Shown here one piece after another: positions 26,863 to 44,922 of a DNA stretch of 64,000 bases. The stretch lies in NCBI GenBank assembly GCA_001179505.1, contig CDMY01000964.1:62001-126000 (forward strand), in the 5' to 3' direction. The DNA comes from Vitrella brassicaformis CCMP3155. Its lineage: Eukaryota; Protista; Chromerida. The notes beneath the pieces are model-generated. The model searched no databases. It was not told where the DNA came from and saw only the letters and a list, made by a program, of their open reading frames with translations. The stretch's first letter is position 1. The number at the start of each line of letters is the position of its first letter. The position numbers and the translations under genes are program-made.

Positions 26863-28418
26863 TCACGCCCATCTCTGCAGGCCCATTCCCCACTGCGGGA
26901 AGCCCTGCTGGGACCGCATCCCCAGGGACGCCACCGACGGCGTCTGCTGCTGCTGCTGTTGCTGCTGTTGGAGGGCACGGTGCTCAGCCTGCTCACGCAA
27001 TAATGTCTTGGTCAGCCTGTTTGAGCGGCCAACACACACAACACAGAAATGAGCTGATGTCAGCCAGGACAGGAGGGGTTCAGTACGGCGGTGTAAGTCG
27101 CTCACTGTTTGACGTTTCTGTAGGCCTGTGGCGGCATGAGGTCGATGTCCAGCGACGCCTGAGTCTCTGTTTGCTGACACAGACAGACAGACAGACAGAG
27201 AAGGAGGCACGCACCGTCACACATTTATGACGACACGCGTGACGCATCGGTTCTCTCTCCTGAAGACGTACAGTGATGAGGCACTCTGGGGCATAGATGC
27301 TGCAGAACCGTACGACCTGGCACACAGACACACAGACACAACACACACACCACCCGTCAAGTCGATCGACCCCCTTGTGCCGTGCGTGGGAGCAATGCAA
27401 CACACGCACCTTGCCCAGGTTGGTTCCGTGGAGCTTTGTGAGCCGTCTGCACAGCTTGTATCGGTCGGCCAGCGGCGCCTCGGTGCGCGAGGGACAGCTG
27501 GTGCTCTCTATCATCTCCATCACACCCTCCAAACTGACACACACACACACACGAAGCCGTGTGCGTCCTCCCTCCCTCGTCGCCTCCCGTCGTCCCCTCA
27601 CACACATGACTCACTCACTCGCTGTCGTCGTCTGCCATATTTCTGTTGTCGGGCGAGTCGTCGTCGCCCGTGGGCTTGGCGTATTTTTTCTTGGCCGTCT
27701 TCTTGGGCCTGCCCTTGCTGGTGGCGGGGGGCGGGGCGGGGAGAGGCACATAGTCGTCCGTCAACTCCTCGTGCGGCGGGTCAGGCACCACTGCACAGAC
27801 GGCACGTATGGCATGGCCGCAGAGGCAACAGAGGGGAGAGAGAGAGAGAGATGGTGGTGTGTTTCGTTGTCTGGGTGGTCCTCTGTGTACCGACCGTGCG
27901 GCAGGTGTCCTGCGTTGAGGGCGTTTTCGATTTCGCGAGTGAAGCGCTCCATCCTTTTGGACGCCTTGTGCACCGCCTGTATGTGTGTGTATGACACCAT
28001 GACACAGAGCAGTGCTCACAGACCTTCGTGTGTTGTGCCTTCGGTACTTACCGATCCCTCGGCATTGTAGAGCTGGCAGTTGCTCCAGATGAGGTAGAGG
28101 TCGCTCCACACCTCATTCGGGTCACGGTAGTGACCCTGGTGCAGCTTCTTCTGCAGGCACACCAACGAACCAACACAACACGTCACCGCCACAGTGGTTG
28201 GCGCACCCGCCCATTCATCTCTCTCCCTCTCCCTCTCTCTTCGCCAGCGACTCACTGACCGACACGGTGCCGAGATCCATGGGTTTCTTGACGATGTCAG
28301 GGTAGTTGATGAGGCCCAGCGCCTTCCAGTCGACAGGTGAGGTGAACCAGAACGCGTATTCGCATTTCTTCAGGCGGTCAACCGTCTGGGACACCAACGC
28401 AGTCCACCTCGCGTCCAT
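26863..28418 (-). CDS. Bromodomain + extra-terminal (ET/NET)-like protein (GTE/BET-like), multi-exon
   Basis: MDARWTALVSQTVDRLKKCEYAFWFTSPVDWKALGLINYPDIVKKPMDLGTV|KKLHQGHYRDPNEVWSDLYLIWSNCQLYN (bromodomain, with the conserved Y and N). Basic linker KGRPKKTAKKK. ET-like LADRYKLCRRLTKLHGTNLGKVVRFC...SLDIDLM. Poly-Q tail, stop 26863. Confidence 0.85.
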
Positions 28419-30217: not shown

Positions 30218-33200
30218 TTACAGGAACCAGAGCTTGGTGGCGAGCTGGTCCGACGGCACCTGGTTGTCCAGCGCCTCGGTCACTTTACGCGCACACCTGA
30301 TGGATGGACAGACACGTAAGTGACGTCCACACACAGACACACAGAGAGAGACATCCACACACACACACACGCACGAGCGGGTGGGCCGTTTGTTTGTGTC
30401 TCCTCACGTCTCGGCGTACTTCACGGGTGCCGGCACACGAATGGGGCCTGAAAGAGCCAAGGGTGTTTGCAATTGGGTGTTTGTCTGTCTGTATGCCTCC
30501 GTTTCCCTCCTTCAGTGTGTGTGTGTGTGTGTACCGCTCCAGTTTTGGTATAGTGTGCTGAGTTGCATGGTGATGCGGCAGAGGCCGTTGACGCCGAACC
30601 GCATGTCGGCATCCCAGTTGGCGGACATGCCGTAGACCTCGTACTTAGTGGGCGTCACGGTGCCTGTGCCAGTCAGGCCCACACGACAGACAGAGGGATT
30701 CAGGGGAGGGAGGGAGGGGAGACACAGAAATGCACGCACACAGAATGAAATTTCGGTGGTGAGAGTTCTCGGGTGTGTTGTGCTGTTGGTGCCCTGCCTT
30801 GTGTGACGAACTGGTGGCAGCCGTAGAAGACATACTGAGTGCTGTCCGTCACCCCTGCACAGACAGGACACACACAGCACAGCACAGAGAGAGAGATGAG
30901 CAGATCAGATGGATGCATTTGCTCAGTGCAGTGGGGGCCAATCTTGATAAGTCGATACGTCTGTCTGTCTGTTATGTGAATATGTTTGCGTGTACCTTAC
31001 CTTGGTCGAAGACGGTTAGTGGCGGCGGATTCTCGAGCGGGCCGCCGCCCGGCTTGCGCACGGCAAACCTGACCACACACACGGACACACACACACACGT
31101 CCAATCACTTGTCCATGTGGGCGCGCTGTGCGTGTGTGTGTGTGTACCTCTGGTTGACGTTTTTGTTAACGATGATGTAGACCCACTTCTCGAACCAAGG
31201 TAAGGTACACACAAACTGGTCTGTGAGGGCAGTGCAGGCACCTTACCTCGGGCTGCCACTCGTCAGTCGTCAGCTGCCTGAACCCCTCCTCAATCATGGG
31301 CAACTCAAAATCAAGAGCAGCGCGCTTCTGTCCCTCACCCAAACCACCACTGCACACACACACACACACGCACACACAGGCAACACACGAGAACTCGGTT
31401 GTCTCCGGGGTGGAGGGNNNNNNNNNNNNNNNNNNNNNNNNNNNNNNNNNNNNNNNNNNNNNNNNNNNNNNNNNNNNNNNNNNNNNNNNNNNNNNNNNNN
31501 NNNNNNNNNNNNNNNNNNNNNNNNNNNNNNNNNNNNNNNNNNNNNNNNNNNNNNNNNNNNNNNNNNNNNNNNNNNNNNNNNNNNNNNNNNNNNNNNNNNN
31601 NNNNNNNNNNNNNNNNNNNNNNNNNNNNNNNNNNNNNNNNNNNNNNNNNNNNNNNNNNNNNNNNNNNNNNNNNNNNNNNNNNNNNNNNNNNNNNNNNNNN
31701 NNNNNNNNNNNNNNNNNTGGGGAGGTGGGAGGTGACCGACCGGTAGATGATGAAGCGGCGTGGCGGCTGGCCCCTGAACCGCGGGTTCTCCAGAAACTTG
31801 GCTATGGCATCTGTCCATCCACACATCACATGAACAGAGAGAGGGAGAGAGAGGGGGGGGTGAGGCCGGGATGGATGTATGTGTGTGTGTGTGCGTACCT
31901 TCGATGAAGACGGGGAAGTTGTCGACCTGCTCTCCCTCCCCCTCCCTCACCCTCACGCTGGTGTAGTACTCGAGGAACAGGTCGTCCACCGTCGCGCTCA
32001 ACACTACCACCGACTTGCCTGCAGCCATCCATCCATCCATCCACACCTCCATCATGGTGTGTTGGTGTGTTGGTGTGCTGGTATACCTACCTCTGGCCTT
32101 TTTGCACTCCACCCCGATGACCATGGTGCTCCGCTTGACCGCCGCCTTGGTGTTCAACGCCCACGCTGCGCCGCCCAACTGCAGAGAGAAAAACAAAAAC
32201 ACATACGCTGCCTGTGGTGGGTGAGGTGGTAAGTGGGGTGGGGGCTTCTCTCTCCCTCTCTCTACATATCTCTCTGTGTCCGTGTGTGTGTTTCCCTTGG
32301 TACCTTGCACGCGATCTGGGCGACCAGTTTCGGGAGTGCCGAGTTCCACCGATTGCCCGAGACCGTCTTGGCTTGCACACCCTACAGGTCATCCAAAGAC
32401 AGACAGACAGACAGACAGACAAGTTGCGTGACAACGTGGTGTCTCTTTCCGCAGTGCGCCCACCTGTGTGAGCACCGCCTCGTTCCCACAGGTCAGCCGC
32501 TGCTTCATGGCCTGTATGACGATACACACACACACACATACCATCCATCCACCCACACCCCCCAGCCCGTTTGTTTCTCTGCCTCCCTCACCTCATAGAC
32601 CTGTTTGGCCTGGGTCTTATTCTCGGGCAGTATGAAGACCACCATGATGGGGTCGCTGGCCTGCTCTATGCGTTCGCGCAGGTCGCCCATGTGCAGCCCG
32701 TAGACGCGCTCGAAGCGGGGGTCGTTGAGGGTGCCCATGTTGAGCACGGGCGGGTAGATGAGCAACGGGTCGTCGTAGCCCATCCCGTACTCTTCACACA
32801 CACATGGACAGGGACAGAGACAAAGGTGTGTGTTGGGGTGTGCTGGGGGGCCTTTTGTGTGTGCGTACGTTCTGCCCTGGATCTTATGTCTCTGACGAGT
32901 CTGGTCTTGAGGGCCTCATGGTTCTGCCCGTAGACCACAATCCAACGCGTCAAGTTGGCCTGTCAACCACACAGGTCATATATGTCAGCCACACACAAGA
33001 TGCAGCACAACTATTGGCGCCTTCCCCCCCCTCTAGAAACACTTACCGGAGCGATGAGCGAGTTGATGTTGAAGTTGGCGTTTCTGGGCGGGCCGGGTAG
33101 GGGTGTGCCGAGCTGATGGCGCTTCTCGGCGTGCTGTTTCTCCTGCAGCATCTCCTTGTCGGGAGACCTGTCGTAGTACCGGAAGGACACGGCCTCATCC

Positions 33201-36090
33201 CCGGCACCCAGATGGCGGCCTGCACACACACATACACATACACACGCACACAGAGAGACACAAGGGGGTGTGCGCATGTGTCGGAGGGGGGGGGGCGGGG
33301 GGGGCGTGCTCTTGTGTGGTGCTTGGTTACCCTTGACCAGGTTGCCGTCCGTCTGGATGGTGATCCCATAGGTCTCCAACACCTCTGCGCACACACACAC
33401 ACACAATGTGTGTCAACACATACGGTGGTGGATTTCGTTCTCTCTGTCTCACTCACCTGCAGCCCTGTTAGGTCCGCCCCCGACGGCCGTCTGGGCCTGC
33501 AGCTTCCGTGCCAGCCCTCTGCACCTGTTCAGCCGCACGCCGGGCAGCATTCGGCACCGGTTGGCGATCTGGTTGTTCAAATCAAAGTTGCTGCGGATGG
33601 ACTCATCCATCCCTGCAAGCGAGGCAAGCCGACAGAGGCAGACTTTATTGATGGGGGGAGGGGAGGGGGGAGGGGAGAGGGGGTGAGGGTGGGGGTGCGG
33701 CTGACCGGTGAGTGTGACTGTCTGTGAGGGCAGGATGATGGTGTTGATGACCTGCTGAGTCCCGTCCGGCATGCGACGAGTCCTCTCGTACTTAACTGCA
33801 GTGCAGCCGACAACCAGTGGATGGATGGATGGATGGATGGACCATTCCTGTGCGTGTGTGCGAGTACCGAGTGCCTGTCCTTCGGCGAGGTTGATGCCGT
33901 ATGTGTTCTGGAAGTACTGGGCGTACGACACCGTCACATCTTGGCCCTGTTGCCGACGGGTGAAGGTGCCGTGGATGCCAGGCTCACCAAACAACAACTG
34001 AACCAAACGACGGGCAGAGGACAGCAAACACACACACACACACACACGCAGAGACACGCTCGTGTGGGAGGGAAAGGGGTGTGGGGGTGTGGGGGTGTGG
34101 GGTGTGCACCTCTGTTATGGCGTAGAGCTTCCTGTCTCTGTTGCCCACGGGGCCGCTCTCCTGCAAGCAAACATCCGACATGTTCAAAGGGTGGGGGCTT
34201 ATTCTGTGGCTGTCCGTCGGTCCTACGTAGATGGTGATGATGCGCCTTCCCTGGAACTCCTCGTTCATCCGCTGCACAAACGCGGCCTCAGTCCCGGTGA
34301 AACGCCGCTGCATCCCCCAACACACACACACATCCATTCCATGGGGCACACGCGTCCGTCCGTTGTCATGATGATGACCCCTTCCCATCCATGTGTGCCC
34401 AGCCCCCCACCCATCATACCCGTCTTTCGTCCAGCACGTCCCGCAGCGTGTTCATGTGGATGATGCGGTGCGTGCAGTCCACCTGACAAAGCAACCATTA
34501 CAGCCACAATGGATGGCCATAGTGAGATTGAAAGACGCAGGTGAAGGAATCGCTGAGCGGGTGGTGGTGGTGGTGGGTGACCTGTAGGTAGAGTGACGCT
34601 TCGAGCTGCTGGATGGAGGTGAAGTACCCGGGGAGAAGTTGGTAGTTGCCCACGGTGGTGGTGCCGCCCAGCTCGGGGTCGACCGGCTGAGCGGTCATCA
34701 TCCCCGTCAGGAACAGATGACGACCGATCACCTGGAACTGCACGAACACACACACATACACACACACACACACAGAGGGGGAGAGGGAGAGGGAGGGACG
34801 GAGGGAGAGGGAAAGTGGTGGATAACTGTTTGTGGCTGTGTGGGTAGGGGTGGGGGGCTGACCCTGAGTTGCCCCATGGCCCTCTTGACGGCACAGTTGA
34901 GATACTGGATGGTCTCCTGGTCCAGCGAACCATCTGTTGCAGACACATTGATGAAAGAAGGGACAGCAACAAGAGAGGACACAGACAGAGAGAAAGAGAC
35001 GTGTACCCACGTGTGTGCCTTCTGTCCCCAGTCCTCCCCCGCGTTGCCCTCCGTACGCATGTCGATGGTATGCCTGAAGATGAAGTTGATCTTCTGAGGT
35101 TCCCCCGTCTGCAGTACAAGAAACACACACAGACACACACAGACACACACAGAGTTCCTCCCATCCCCTCCAAGCCCCCCACCCCCCCACCCCCCACTAC
35201 CCCCGCACTCACGTCAGCGGCCTGTGGGAGCGTCACGGAAGCCGTGTGGTTCGGCTGTATGTTGGTGTCGACCTTGACAAACGTGTTCATGCCCTGGTAC
35301 AGCAGCGCACCCCCAAAGGCATTCAAACTCTGCAATATCTGGCGGACATAAGAAAAGAGGGAACACACACCGGGGCACAAGAGGCCCCCCGCCGGAAGGA
35401 CCATGCATCTTCTTGTGCAGAGAGATCCCCCCCCCCCNNNNNNNNNNNNNNNNNNNNNNNNNNNNNNNNNNNNNNNNNNNNNNNNNNNNNNNNNNNNNNN
35501 NNNNNNNNNNNNNNNNNNNNNNNNNNNNNNNNNNNNNNNNNNNNNNNNNNNNNNNNNNNNNNNNNNNNNNNNNNNNNNNNNNNNNNNNNNNNNNNNNNNN
35601 NNNNNNNNNNNNNNNNNNNNNNNNNNNNNNNNNNNNNNNNNNNNNNNNNNNNNNNNNNNNNNNNNNNNNNNNNNNNNNNNNNNNNNNNNNNNNNNNNNNN
35701 NNNNNNNNNNNNNNNNNNNNNNNNNNNNNNNNNNNNNCCCCCTCCCTCCCCCGTGAGCTTTCCCGTCTGGGGCCATCGTCTGTGTCGTACCTGCTGGGAG
35801 TTTCGGTAGATCAGCGCCCGCTGCGGCCCGAGGGCGTTCACGGGCGGGTCAAACTCTGCACCACAACCACCACAAATACCACACAATACGGCCCACACCA
35901 CAGATCTGGCCACATCTGTCACGCATCAGCTCCACGTACCTGTGGCGTATACCCAAACGGCGAATTTCTTCTTGAGTCCGATCTCGAACAGGTTGGTCTG
36001 GGCCTCCACCTCTACGCCTAAGCTACAGAAGAGCGGAAAGCCCTGCGGATCTGTCGGCCGGGGTGCCGGCCCCTGAACTTGTAATGCCAT
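30218..36090 (-). CDS. PIWI: Piwi-type Argonaute protein (N, PAZ, MID, PIWI), predicted slicer-inactive, many exons, spans two gaps
   Basis: ATG 36090 MALQVQG...AQTNLFEIG (Ago N-terminal TNxF). VDCTHRIIH. PAZ: VSYAQYFQNTYGINL. MID: VVFILPE..VYEAMKQRL..LTQGVQAKT..QIACKLGGAAW. PIWI: MVIGVEC, FIIYRGGLGEGQ, PPPLTVFD, GTVTPTKY, LYQNWSGPIRVPAPVKYAE. C-terminus KLWFL* (TAA at 30218). Confidence 0.92.
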
Positions 36091-37386: not shown

Positions 37387-38011
37387 TCAGTTTTGCAGAC
37401 ACACGGCAGCTCCCGTGACGATCAACAATGCGCCAGCAAGACCGACTGAACACACAAGCAGTACAACACGCACATGAGCGGCTGCCCTGCCCTGCCCTGC
37501 TCTGCTCTGTGCTCTGCGGACCTACCTGGGTCAGTGAATGTCTGCAGGAGCTGTGTGTCGAGGCAGACCTCAGTGATGTACGTGAACAGAAAGGAAAGGC
37601 TGTTGGCCAGCGGCACAGCCACGGGCAACTCTGCACACGCACATACACCACACGCACACGAGTGTGATGCATGGCAGTGGAGGGACTGTCTGTGGTGCTG
37701 TGCTGACTGTAGTCTCTCAGTAGGAAGTAGTAGAGCACACTGCCCACCTGGTTCAGCAGATATGGCACGATGAACTGAATGAACAGACACACGCAGGCAC
37801 ACATACACATACACACGTACGGTTCGACAACGCCGCTCGGCTCGTTGGCCTTGTTGATGCTCTCACATCTCACCTTGGTGTTTGTGAGCAGCCTCAGCGT
37901 CCTCTTGAGGATGTGTTCTCCTTGCGGGCTGGTGTCATGTGTATCATTGCACTGCAGGAAGGGTGACGTGACGCCCCATATGGCACCCACCAGCAGGAGC
38001 GCCGCCCTCAT
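37387..38011 (-). CDS. TMEM234: TMEM234-family small membrane protein (4 exons)
   Basis: MRAALLLVGAIWGVTSPFL...LLTNTK|FIVPYLLNQVGSVLYYFLLRDY|LPVAVPLANSLSFLFTYITE|GLAGALLIVTGAAVCLQN*; the family motifs WGxTxPF, PxLLNQxGS and VPxxNSLxFxFT are present. Confidence 0.85.
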
Positions 38012-38203: not shown

Positions 38204-38881
38204 ATGCAGATCCCGCTCATTCCCTTCATCAGCGTCATCTTTGCGGCAGCCCTGCACCTCTCAGGTGCATTCCTTCAACCGTCAACTCATGCATCTCTCT
38301 TCCAGCGCCGTCAGCAGCTCACATCCAGGACGAGTAGATGGTCCACAGCAACCGAAACAGCAGACACGGCTGAAACAGCAGCCGCAGAGGCACCATGGCG
38401 CAGCGCAGCATCGGTGAGTGAGCTGACCAGCGACGTACCCGTGGTGATGGACATCGAGGCCATCCGTAAGGTGCTCCCGCACCGCTACCCCTTCCTGCTT
38501 GTGGACAAAGTCATCGAGTTCGAGCCCGGCAAGCGCGCCGTGGGCGTCAAGACCATCTCGGCCAACGAGCCGCAGTTCACCGGCCACTTCCCGGAGCGAG
38601 CCATCATGCCCGGCGTGCTGCAGATCGAGGCCATGGCGCAGCTGGGCGGGCTGGTGTGCCTGCAGGAGCCGCTGAGCGACGGCAAGGGGGACTTTTTCTT
38701 TGCTGGTGTGGATGGGGTGCGGTGGAAGCGGCCGGTGGTGCCTGGCGATGTGCTTGTGATGGAGATGGAGCTGCTGTCGTGGCGGGCCAAGTTCGGGATA
38801 GCTAAGATGACGGGTGCGGGATATGTGGACGGGCAGAAGGCCGTGGAGGTCAAGGAGTTCACCTTTGCACTTGCCAAGTGA
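38204..38881 (+). CDS. fabZ: Beta-hydroxyacyl-ACP dehydratase (FASII), plastid-targeted, intronless
   Basis: [39 protein letters not shown] and PVVPGD motifs. Bipartite leader [23 protein letters not shown] followed by an S/T/R-rich transit peptide. Confidence 0.95.
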
Positions 38882-41472: not shown

Positions 41473-44400
41473 TCAGCATATGATTTCCAACGCGCATCTC
41501 TTCTCCTTCGTCTCCCACAGAGCCACCGCATCCCCACCCCCAGCGTCCTCCATCTCCCGTTTCCGTGATTTGCGGATGGCCACGTCAAATGTGACCTCAA
41601 ATGAGTGCGCCATGCCCCGACTGAAGCACTTGTACACAATGTCCTTGTTCTTCTCGCACTTGACGGAGACGGCGGTCCGCAGCTGGTGCAGGAACTTGCC
41701 CGCCTGCGGCGCGGCTTCGTCGAGGAAGGCGCACCCCTCGATCCGCTCGCCGCGAAGCTCCGGGTAGAGGTCGCCGATGGCGTACCTCCCCTCCGGGCCC
41801 TGCACGACGGCGAAGCACTCGGGGATCTCGTCGATACCCTCTGTGGGGAGAGGGGTGGTGCTTGTGGGGAGAGGGGTGGTGCTTGTGGGGAGAGGGGTGG
41901 TGCTCGTGTCCGTGTCGCCATCATCGCCAGGGGGCTCGCCTTCAGTCGGCGTCGGTGTGGTGCTGCTCCGATCTTCGTCTCCATCCCCGGGATCCTCTGG
42001 TGCTTCTGGTGGCGTTTCTGGTGGCCCTTCTGATGGTGCTTCTGGTGGTATTTCGATGGGCTCTTGGGAGACCAGCAGCTCAAATGCCAGCAGCGCATTG
42101 ATGAGGCCATGGCCGGTCTGGATGCTGTAGCCACTTGTGGGAGGAATGGACCCCTGCCGGCTGAACCAGGCTGTTGCATTTCAGCATACACACAGATGAC
42201 ACACACATAGTATCCATCCATGCACTCTGTGTGGGCGTCGCTGGCTCCCTTACTTGGCATGCGTCGTGCGGTGTCGAATAGAGCCTGCAGGATGTCGCCG
42301 TTGGACCTGTCGGTGAACACCTCCTTCAAGAGGTGAGCTATCGCCGCCGCATTGGGGGCCGCCGCTGACGTGCCTGGGGAAGGAGGATACCACCAACACC
42401 GAGGCACATCCATCCACATACACACATCAAGTCAAGTGTGACTGACTGACCGAAGAAGTTCGGGAATCCGTCTCCTTCCGCGTCATCGCGGCAGCTTCCT
42501 TCTTCTGGACATCGAAGCGGGAAGGCCAACGTGTTGCAACCTGAGTCAACCAGACACACACATGGAACAAGCCCATCCACGTCTTCCCGCCCCCATCCAC
42601 CCATCATCTGTACACACACGCAACATACCATCCGCTGCAGTCACGCGCCGGCCCGATCGGGTGTCGGGCGAGGGCAGCCGGACCCCTTCCGGATTGAAGA
42701 GGATGGCCAGCCCTTCGCCGCCAACATAGGCCTGGGGAAGGGCCGGGATGCTGCCGAAACGCGGCGTCTCACGGTAGTCGGCGGCAGCGACCGGTACGGC
42801 ATTCGGTGCCAGGGCGTGGCCCCACGACGTCGGCCCGCCGAAGGTCTCGTCCACAAGACCGCCCGTATAGTCCTGACAGTCGCAGGAAGCAACGCATACG
42901 GCCATCCATCCATCCAGCCATGCACTCGCTCACCGACAGTGCCCATCCTCGTGTAATAATGTTGAACCGCCCGCCGTTAAACTCATCGCCCGTGGGGAAC
43001 CGCGCCACCATGACGAACACCTCAACCATCTCATCCTTGTCGTTGGTCCACACTGCCGCCTCCGCAGGGTCGCCAGCGATGTTGCTCGTGTCACTGAAGA
43101 CGAGAGGCTTCCCCTCATCGATGCCGTCTCGGTCAAATATAAGGACGGCAAAGTCGCTTGTGGCACCGGGGGACTCGGCACTTGCCGACGCGTACGTCTG
43201 CGCCCAGTGAAGGACGACACGCAGCGAACGCGAAGGGGGCAGAGCGATCCTGAAGAAGGGGCAGGCAGTCTCGCCGTCCTCCTGCCCGGGACAGTCGGTG
43301 TCTTGGAGGGGCTCATCACTGCCCTCGTTCCAATCATGGGCGCCCTCGTATTGGATGTCGAAGTTGGCCAGCAGGAAGTTGTTGATGTTCGTGGGCACGT
43401 CGGTCCTGCTGTAGCTGCCCTCTAGACCGGAATTCCCGCTGTTGCCCGCCTGCGTGTGTGGGTGAGGTGGAGTGAGGGAGTGATGTTTGTGATGTGTGTA
43501 AGAGGGTAGGTGTGGGTGGGTGCGTACCGATACGAAATAGAGCGCCCCGTCTTCGGTGACTTCCTCGATTGCCTGGGCGATGATGCCGTCCTGATACCAT
43601 GGCCTGACACACACCACACACACACGCAGATATTGTGGTCATTATTGGACCCACACCTGCCGTCGGCACTTACTCAAAGAAGTATTTGACGTCATCGACC
43701 AGTGTGTTGCAGCCAGCTTCGCGCCGCAGCCGGAGGATGCCGTTCGCGAAGTCGGCCTGGCCTGCACCACCCAGAACCACCTCCAACATACACACAGAGG
43801 CATGTCTGTGCCGTCCGTCTTTCTCTCTTCCCTCTGTCTGTCCCTTCCACTGACCCAAGACAGCGGTGTGGAAGGCGTACAAGGGCATCTCGGGCAGCAA
43901 GTCGGCAATCAGCTCTATCATGCCGGACCCCTCGTCGTTGAGGGTGGACGCGTCCCGCGACCCAAACGGCTCGCCGTCACGCAAATTGATCACACCCTGT
44001 ACCAGCATCTCGCCTTCGAAGGCGTCGTCGGGAATCTCACCGGCCTCCCGCACGCCCTTACCCTCGACAAAGTCAAATCTGATGGATCCACGCCCACCAC
44101 ACCACAGGGACACACAGAGACAGGATGGATGGGTGGGTGCAGTGTGGGTGTGCTTACGAGTCCGCGAGTACGCCGACGCAGCTGAATCCCGACTGGTCGA
44201 TGTCAAAGGATTCGAGCAGCTGGTCCATGTTGTGGACGAAGATGGCCTGGCTGGTCGCCGCGCCCCTCCCCACATTCTCAAGCTGCATCGGTGACGCGCC
44301 AGTCTTTCCGTGCTTGTACGTCTCATATTCGGACGCCATTGGGCGCATCTGCTCCCTCTCCTTCTGCGTCGCGCTGATGAGCTTGATGCCCTCGATCAGC

Positions 44401-44922
44401 CTGGCATCCTCGATGCCCTCGTAAGGCAGGAACCCCCCTATCATGTGCCGATACGACGTCAGCCGCACCATCCCCAGTCCGCGGAGCCGCCGCATGATGC
44501 CGAACATGTCGGCGTCCCTGGCAGTGCTGATGTCCACATAGATGGAGTTCTCGGTCAGCAGGCTGCCTACGACGCTGTTGATGAAGCCGATGACTGCTGT
44601 CCGGTTTCCACCCCTCTCCAGCGGCTGTTGGCCTGGCGGCCTGACCGGGACTGAGTAGATGGGTGGGACGGCTTTGGGCGAGCGGGGCGCCCTCTGGCCA
44701 TCGAACAGCCGCTGGACGTCACACAGGAGGGCGTCAAGCTTCGGAGGGCACCTAAATGACCGCTCTGCAGAAGAGGGAAAGGAAGCGTCAGTCCTGCGAT
44801 TGTTGTGGCCTTGTGGCCTTGTTTTTCTCACCTGCTTTGGGCGCCAGGTCCACCTGTGCGTGCACAATCAGCACATGGAGGGCGACCAGCGACAGAAGGG
44901 CCCTCGGCGAGAGGGCCAACAT
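41473..44922 (-). CDS. Secreted subtilase (S8-like) of bacterial type with predicted Asp-Glu-Ser triad, Pro/Thr linker and small Cys-containing C-terminal domain; multi-exon
   Basis: Signal peptide MLALSPRALLSLVALHVLIVHA; prodomain; VGVLADS|FD (Asp); NDEGSGMIELIADLLP (Glu at the His position); FHTAVLG|QADFANGI; LVDDVKYFFE|PWYQDGIIAQA; YFVS|AGNSG (oxyanion Asn); NFFG|TSAAAPNAAAIA (Ser); GHGLINA. The 3' end is uncertain. Confidence 0.85.
41843..41905 (-). repeat. Coding tandem repeat, 21 bp x3 (STTPLPT) in the subtilase linker
   Basis: gtggggagaggggtggtgctt is repeated three times (the last copy has one mismatch). Confidence 0.9.

Follow-up and report, generated by a model that had tools for sequence, protein, structure and literature searches.

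A transcribed PIWI-clade Argonaute of the chromerid Vitrella brassicaformis with an intact guide pocket and a predicted loss of slicing

A stretch of 64,000 nucleotides from contig CDMY01000964.1 of Vitrella brassicaformis CCMP3155, referred to here as the window, carries on its minus strand (36090..30218) an intact, spliced and transcribed Piwi gene. Its product is a PIWI-clade Argonaute that keeps the pocket for a small RNA guide, is predicted to be unable to slice and would probably act by recruiter-like silencing or marking of its targets. PIWI-clade proteins bind piRNA- or scnRNA-like guides that are often 2'-O-methylated, and canonical slicers cut with an RNase H-type catalytic tetrad, D-E-D-H/D. 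The Vitrella Piwi is predicted not to slice because the metal-holding Asp of the YRDG motif is replaced by Gly. A preliminary description of the window had proposed a non-slicing small-RNA effector in a relative of apicomplexans; V. brassicaformis is such a relative, and the combination of an intact pocket with a non-canonical tetrad makes a non-slicing effector the best reading of the predicted protein.

Gene structure, guide pocket and catalytic tetrad

According to our splice-site model, the gene comprises 28 exons and 27 introns and encodes a product of 875 amino acids. The exons were derived from open frames and splice sites, and a query with part of the stop-free frame that holds exon 3 (34268-35848, minus strand, residues 171-212 of the frame) retrieved a protein from the same contig, deposited in UniProt as "Piwi domain-containing protein" of V. 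brassicaformis CCMP3155 (P0001), which the translation of the exon model matches exactly over 875 residues (100% identity). Later homology searches were performed with the deposited P0001 as query, and the joined exons were used for the phase check, the threading of codons for dN/dS and the identity check. The introns have GT-AG ends in 26 of 27 cases and GC-AG ends in the remaining one, and measure 61-146 nt, other than those that bear assembly gaps. An intron of 66 nt within the PAZ region (34226-34161) continues the reading frame of the exons on either side without a stop and would add 22 residues if read through, but the length of the transcript contig X1 demonstrated its removal by splicing, and P0001 likewise lacks these residues. 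When the 64-kb window was searched by tblastn, no second Piwi copy was found, the gene at 30218-36090 being the sole match. Microsatellites of the (CA/TG)n and GGAT type recur in the introns (30350-30375, 31126-31150, 32020-32045, 33386-33408 and others) and gave rise to dozens of false long-range joints (e.g. 30351 to 32025) as well as to depth spikes in the contig mapping.

HMMER aligned residues 23-374 of the protein to residues 116-428 of PIWIL1, and residues 541-875 also aligned to PIWIL1; together with the Pfam matches (Table 1) this gives, in a single chain, the domain order N-PAZ-MID-PIWI that members of the PIWI clade have within about 800-900 aa. In the MID pocket, Y569, K573, Q586, Q608 and K612 occupy the columns of Y, K, Q, Q and K in solved Piwis, and L875 forms the C-terminus, so that the pocket for the 5' phosphate of the guide is complete; in published PIWI structures the terminal carboxylate helps to hold this phosphate. 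The combination Y-K-Q-K was present at four pocket positions in all odd-tetrad sequences printed from an alignment of 165 sequences, a tally that covers these printed sequences and leaves aside the 121 D-E-D-H rows. A motif scan of the first 120 residues found no RG, GR or GRG motif, and the stretch ahead of the N domain is no longer than about 22 residues. The pocket residues, the LWFL terminus, the PAZ motif and the lack of N-terminal RG/GRG repeats had all been named in the preliminary description and were recovered here by alignment to solved Piwis and the codon map, by the match to Pfam PF02170 and by the motif scan, respectively.

The catalytic site was located in two ways. Comparison by phmmer with solved PIWI structures (PIWIL1, 9s0z; Ephydatia Piwi-A, 7kx7 and 7yfq) paired E636, E671, G706 and E849 with the motifs GIDC, qELvd, YRDGVGDGQ and YAHKLA, respectively, and a separate MAFFT alignment with relatives resulted in the same tetrad columns. 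Consequently, E-E-G-E replaces D-E-D-H: three of the four cutting residues are lost, and the protein does not possess the residues of a competent slicer. Among the 165 aligned Piwi relatives, 121 have D-E-D-H and 3 have D-E-D-D. In Argonautes, mutation of the YRDG Asp abolishes slicing. Our codon map and alignments confirmed Glu at the first Asp position, Gly at the YRDG position, Glu at the final His position and a retained Glu finger (GEQVD) as read in the preliminary description, with additional support for the Gly from the matching splice of a paralog, and the alignment with Argonautes that had been suggested as a check placed the catalytic residues in the claimed columns, not elsewhere. 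The tetrad had, however, been termed rewritten, a word that implies design and that we do not retain, as the tetrad appears to represent one stage of degeneration across the chromerid Piwi clade.

Table 1. Positions of the Vitrella Piwi gene, its domains, key codons and gaps, and of annotated neighbouring genes, counted from the first letter of the window
Feature	Position	Strand	Basis or remark
Piwi coding region, whole	30218..36090	-	ATG at 36090, stop TAA at 30220-30218; tblastn blocks agree
Exons 1-7, N domain and linker 1, residues 1-228, without RG/GRG repeats	34420..36090	-	HMMER, X1 contig, motif scan
Assembly gap within intron 2 (35790-35339)	35438..35737		No concealed exon
PAZ domain, residues 224-367, exons 7-12	33548..34434	-	Pfam PF02170, 30.9 bits (cut-off 28.8)
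Pfam Piwi domain, residues 554-857, exons 16-28	30275..32642	-	PF02171, 154.3 bits, E = 5.9e-45, profile positions 2-299 of 302
MID 5'-phosphate pocket codons	32304..32597	-	Y569 32597-32595, K573 32505-32503, Q586 32466-32464, Q608 32318-32316, K612 32306-32304
First catalytic position, E636 (IGVECKK), codon GAG	32107..32109	-	Asp in Piwis; phmmer, MAFFT, codon map
Glu-finger position, E671 (GEGEQVD), codon GAG	31930..31932	-	Retained; aligned to E of qELvd in PIWIL1
Assembly gap within intron 21 (31740-31350)	31418..31717		91 real letters in intron, a normal length for the gene
Third catalytic position, G706 (IYRGGLGEGQ), codon GGT	31346..31348	-	Asp of YRDG in Piwis; first full codon of exon 22
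Sole GC-AG intron	30664..30797	-	GT at the same donor in paralog P0003
Fourth catalytic position, E849 (VKYAETCARK), codon GAG	30410..30412	-	His of YAHKLA in Piwis
C-terminal LWFL	30221..30232	-	Aligned to LYYL/LFFL ends of solved Piwis
Bromodomain protein, 300 aa, downstream	26863-28418	-	Annotated
TMEM234 gene, upstream	37387-38011	-	Annotated
FabA-like dehydratase, upstream	38204-38881	+	Annotated
Subtilase-like gene, 917 aa, upstream	41473-44922	-	Annotated

Expression, constraint and related Piwi proteins

Transcription of the Piwi gene is evident from a spliced transcript contig (X1 record 2) of 1774 nt, whose seven listed pieces end within 3 nt of exon boundaries and which spans exons 1-16, the lengths between the pieces fitting short unlisted exons; expression, on which the preliminary description had made its reading depend, is thereby documented. 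The same contig crosses the assembly gap in intron 2, where exon 1 is followed by 65 nt that correspond exactly to exon 2 and then by exon 3, with nothing extra in between. In a partial duplicate of the gene (locus L004) the flanks of this gap lie about 3 nt apart.

The closest relative of P0001 is the paralog P0003, a protein of 870 amino acids with 85% identity and the same E-E-G-E tetrad, encoded on contig CDMY01000786.1 by a gene without a gap. Codon comparison of the two yielded a dN of 0.084, a dS of 0.225 and a dN/dS of 0.37, with regional values of 0.18 for PAZ, 0.34 for PIWI and 0.49 for MID. Since P0001 and P0003 agree in all four tetrad residues at a dS of about 0.23, the changes in the tetrad predate the duplication. 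P0001 is the slower of the pair, its terminal branch in the IQ-TREE tree measuring 0.059 compared to 0.093 for P0003. Taken together, the kept pocket, the lost tetrad, this dN/dS and the spliced transcript are those of a non-catalytic Argonaute with a predicted activity in silencing.

The assignment to the Piwi-type Argonautes in the preliminary description was borne out by comparison with solved structures and by phylogeny. A phmmer search of the PDB returned 11 Piwi chains at 4e-47 to 4e-36, whereas AGO-clade chains followed from 2e-21 (hAgo2 2e-21). An exhaustive HMMER search across 1.84 billion representatives returned 2624 matches, the best of which were, in this order, the paralog, two further Vitrella fragments, Chromera velia Cvel_1260 (33% identity) and then animal and ciliate Piwis; the named sequences among the 150 best representatives were all Piwi-like. 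Trees were calculated with FastTree from 157 rows and with IQ-TREE under a mixture model from 45 rows; AGO-clade sequences were left out of them, and the split between Piwi and Ago rests on the scores. In both trees, the sequences from Vitrella and Chromera together with two environmental sequences formed a clade with 100% support that was nested among ciliate Piwis, the nearest outgroups being those of Tetrahymena, Ichthyophthirius, Stentor, Blepharisma and Paramecium. Within this clade the tetrad reads E-E-G-E in Vitrella P0001 and P0003, D-D-T-E in Vitrella P0004 and CEM11784.1, D-D-D-T in Chromera Cvel_1260 and Cvel_5283 and likewise in the environmental P0005, K-?-D-D in Chromera Cvel_3726 and E-?-S-R in the environmental P0056, and D-E-D-H was found in none of the sampled members. 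Since no member of the clade has D-E-D-H and all odd-tetrad sequences printed have Y-K-Q-K, the active site appears to have decayed stepwise across the chromerid clade with the guide pocket fixed throughout.

The sample of Vitrella paralogs was obtained by a word search, which finds close kin only, and by 30 name look-ups among the 150 best representatives and is not a full genome census; the named Vitrella cluster P0020/P0169 was found beyond the three proteins from word and by-reference searches. A truncated partial duplicate of the Piwi gene lies on CDMY01000964.1 about 78 kb off and outside the window. It consists of exons 2-6 only, with 88-93% nucleotide identity. In the annotation it yields P0002, a protein of 343 amino acids in which the second half derives from unrelated sequence. 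Beside it stands an inverted copy, 81% identical, of the TMEM234 region upstream of the true gene (L004:6250-7135, L004:9306-10454).

With regard to genomic neighbours, a gene for a histone deacetylase (HDAC) of 1073 amino acids (L001:6827-8913, CDMY01000786.1) comes after the P0003 gene (L001:950-5913) in the same orientation, whereas downstream of the window copy there are an unrelated gene for 128 amino acids and the bromodomain gene. A conserved Piwi-HDAC module was rejected, as the HDAC gene adjoins P0003 only, and comparison of the P0001 and P0003 loci revealed no conserved chromatin-gene neighbour to back the hypothetical role on chromatin or as a recruiter that the preliminary description had considered possible. 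The annotated neighbours of the window copy (bromodomain, TMEM234, FabA-like and subtilase-like genes) have no evident tie to RNA silencing.

Alternative explanations and proposed mode of action

Some of our observations weigh against a functional Piwi that does not cut its targets: the direct 31741|31349 joint between exons 21 and 22 was absent from the joint tables of reads and contigs, in which false joints caused by repeats predominated; the dN/dS of 0.37 overall and of 0.49 in MID indicates moderate constraint only; the Vitrella Piwi family includes a truncated copy, the P0002 fragment; and three acidic residues persist at the site, which leaves room for residual or altered metal binding. 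The missing joint is relevant to the possibility that the Gly at the third position results from a false splice, with the gap in intron 21, which falls precisely at the point where the motif is split in two, concealing an exon or an alternative sequence that restores YRDG. However, the donor TACCG|GTCGGT and the acceptor TGCAG|TGGTGG, both in phase 2, rebuild the codon CGT for Arg and thus produce Y-R-G-G-L-G-E-G-Q, and the paralog P0003 possesses at this place an ungapped intron of 83 nt with the same donor, acceptor and phase that also reads YRGGLGEGQ (L001 4960-4975). In addition, the 91 real letters already make up a normal intron, the exon ends abut without a missing residue when compared to PIWIL1, the alignment to Piwis leaves no room for extra residues at the joint of exons 21 and 22, and the depth of X1 per bin equals contig depth times exonic letters only with exon ends at 31741 and 31349. 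Moreover, whatever the gap holds, the residues at the first and fourth positions depart from the canonical ones. A concealed exon is thus hardly credible, and the splice across the gap, for which the preliminary description had called for a check, is upheld by the concordance of paralog intron, depth and alignment. Judged from these genomic and transcript sequences, we regard G706 as a real residue and not as an artefact of the gap.

The moderate constraint and the truncated copy might instead indicate that the gene is a recent redundant duplicate heading for decay, which is transcribed without doing useful work and whose broken tetrad is a symptom. The presence of several Vitrella Piwi copies, one of them truncated and on the same contig, and a dN/dS that does not reflect strong constraint would be compatible with this explanation, but all 28 exons are open, all introns have standard ends, a spliced transcript is present, every pocket residue is kept, and P0001 evolves more slowly than P0003. 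Furthermore, the identity of the tetrad in both paralogs despite a dS of 0.23 shows that its changes have been kept since the duplication, and we consider decay of this kind improbable. The persisting acidic residues, on the other hand, would be expected if the site were re-wired rather than dead, such that E636, E671 and E849 hold metal ions and RNA is cut by a non-canonical acidic triad. The Gly at the position of the YRDG Asp, where mutation abolishes slicing, has no side chain, the Glu that replaces Asp at the first position has a longer one, and sister copies with Thr at the third position as well as Chromera copies without other members of the tetrad resemble drift and not a conserved new site. 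Although three carboxylates are left, an Asp occupies the fourth position in the few D-E-D-D relatives and a study of Paramecium Piwis left slicing with E-D-H open (PMC3105430), cutting by such a triad therefore seems very unlikely.

For a Piwi that binds a guide and does not cut, the following mode of action can be envisaged. The MID/PIWI pocket would bind a small RNA by its 5'-monophosphate and the PAZ domain would bind the 3' end, and the guide-loaded protein would base-pair with target RNA. Such a protein would have to take up its guide without itself slicing the passenger strand, and the silencing or marking of its targets would fall to factors that it recruits, in the way known from non-catalytic Argonautes of other systems. 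More speculatively, chromerids, the photosynthetic sister group of apicomplexans, may have inherited an alveolate Piwi whose whole expanded clade turned slicer-independent before the split of Vitrella and Chromera. In that case the gene described here might encode a working effector for nuclear or transposon-directed silencing by small RNAs, a pathway that parasites went on to lose, and the E...E pattern, which recurs in Twi9, might mark a selected non-cutting state instead of drift. We regard this scenario as possible, though doubtful. In any case, a relative of apicomplexans retains expressed Piwi-type Argonautes, none of which is a canonical slicer within the sampled chromerid clade, and P0001, P0003, two further Vitrella genes and three Chromera genes provide a starting set for the study of small-RNA silencing before its loss in parasites.

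Comparison with known Argonautes

Animal PIWIs (PIWIL1, 9s0z; Siwi, 5guh; Drosophila Piwi, 6kr6; Ephydatia Piwi-A, 7kx7) are the best matches of the Vitrella protein among solved structures and have in common with it the domain order, the MID pocket, the NWxGxIRVPAP motif and a C-terminal hydrophobic tail. However, identity to them is only about 30%, and at the three positions that are changed in Vitrella the animal proteins (9s0z; 7yfq, 7kx7) have Asp, Asp and His. Animal Piwis also carry N-terminal arginine-rich motifs for Tudor docking (RG/RA methylation), whereas the first 120 residues of the Vitrella protein are devoid of RG and GR, in contrast to Piwis of the animal piRNA pathway. Chromera Cvel_1260, Cvel_5283 and Cvel_3726 together with Vitrella CEM11784.1 and P0004 belong to the same clade as P0001, share the YKQK pocket and likewise lack D-E-D-H, but are only 33-48% identical to P0001 and have other tetrads. 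Among these Vitrella proteins, only P0001 and P0003 have in addition lost the first Asp.

A tetrad resembling that of P0001 was observed outside the chromerids in Twi9p of Tetrahymena thermophila (P0074), which reads E-T-Q-E: as in P0001, its two outer positions are occupied by Glu, and the third lacks the Asp. In contrast to the Vitrella protein, Twi9 no longer possesses the Glu finger, and since it sits in a different, ciliate subclade, the likeness is convergent. In Ichthyophthirius P0138 the tetrad is E-T-Q-G. A first-position Glu, accompanied in Twi9 by another at the fourth, is an independently recurring feature of alveolate Piwis.

A search of the literature collection consulted here for work on Piwi or Argonaute proteins of chromerids found nothing relevant. 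The preliminary description had postulated an uncharacterised small-RNA pathway, which is appropriate in so far as chromerid Piwis are unstudied, but non-catalytic Piwis of alveolates were already known as a kind (PMC3105430). In Paramecium, Ptiwi07, the ortholog of macronuclear Tetrahymena Twi8, has the triad I-D-Q, and Ptiwi12 and Ptiwi15 have E-D-H, for which the authors left the ability to slice open (PMC3105430). Similar to the Vitrella protein, these ciliate proteins are alveolate members of the PIWI clade that keep the residues for binding the ends of small RNAs, have a mutated triad and have been read as non-slicing effectors (PMC3105430). They are, however, not orthologs, as the Vitrella protein with its E-E-G-E substitutions belongs to the separate chromerid clade, and their small-RNA cargoes and localisation are known, whereas the Vitrella protein is known from sequence. 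Non-cutting Piwis are already established in ciliates and worms, and with the Vitrella protein itself already deposited, no new principle is added. The non-catalytic ciliate Piwis have been likened to the non-catalytic WAGOs of Caenorhabditis elegans (PMC3105430), which belong to another Argonaute clade: as in the chromerids, these are expanded paralogs without catalytic residues, and they act via recruited factors (PMC3105430).

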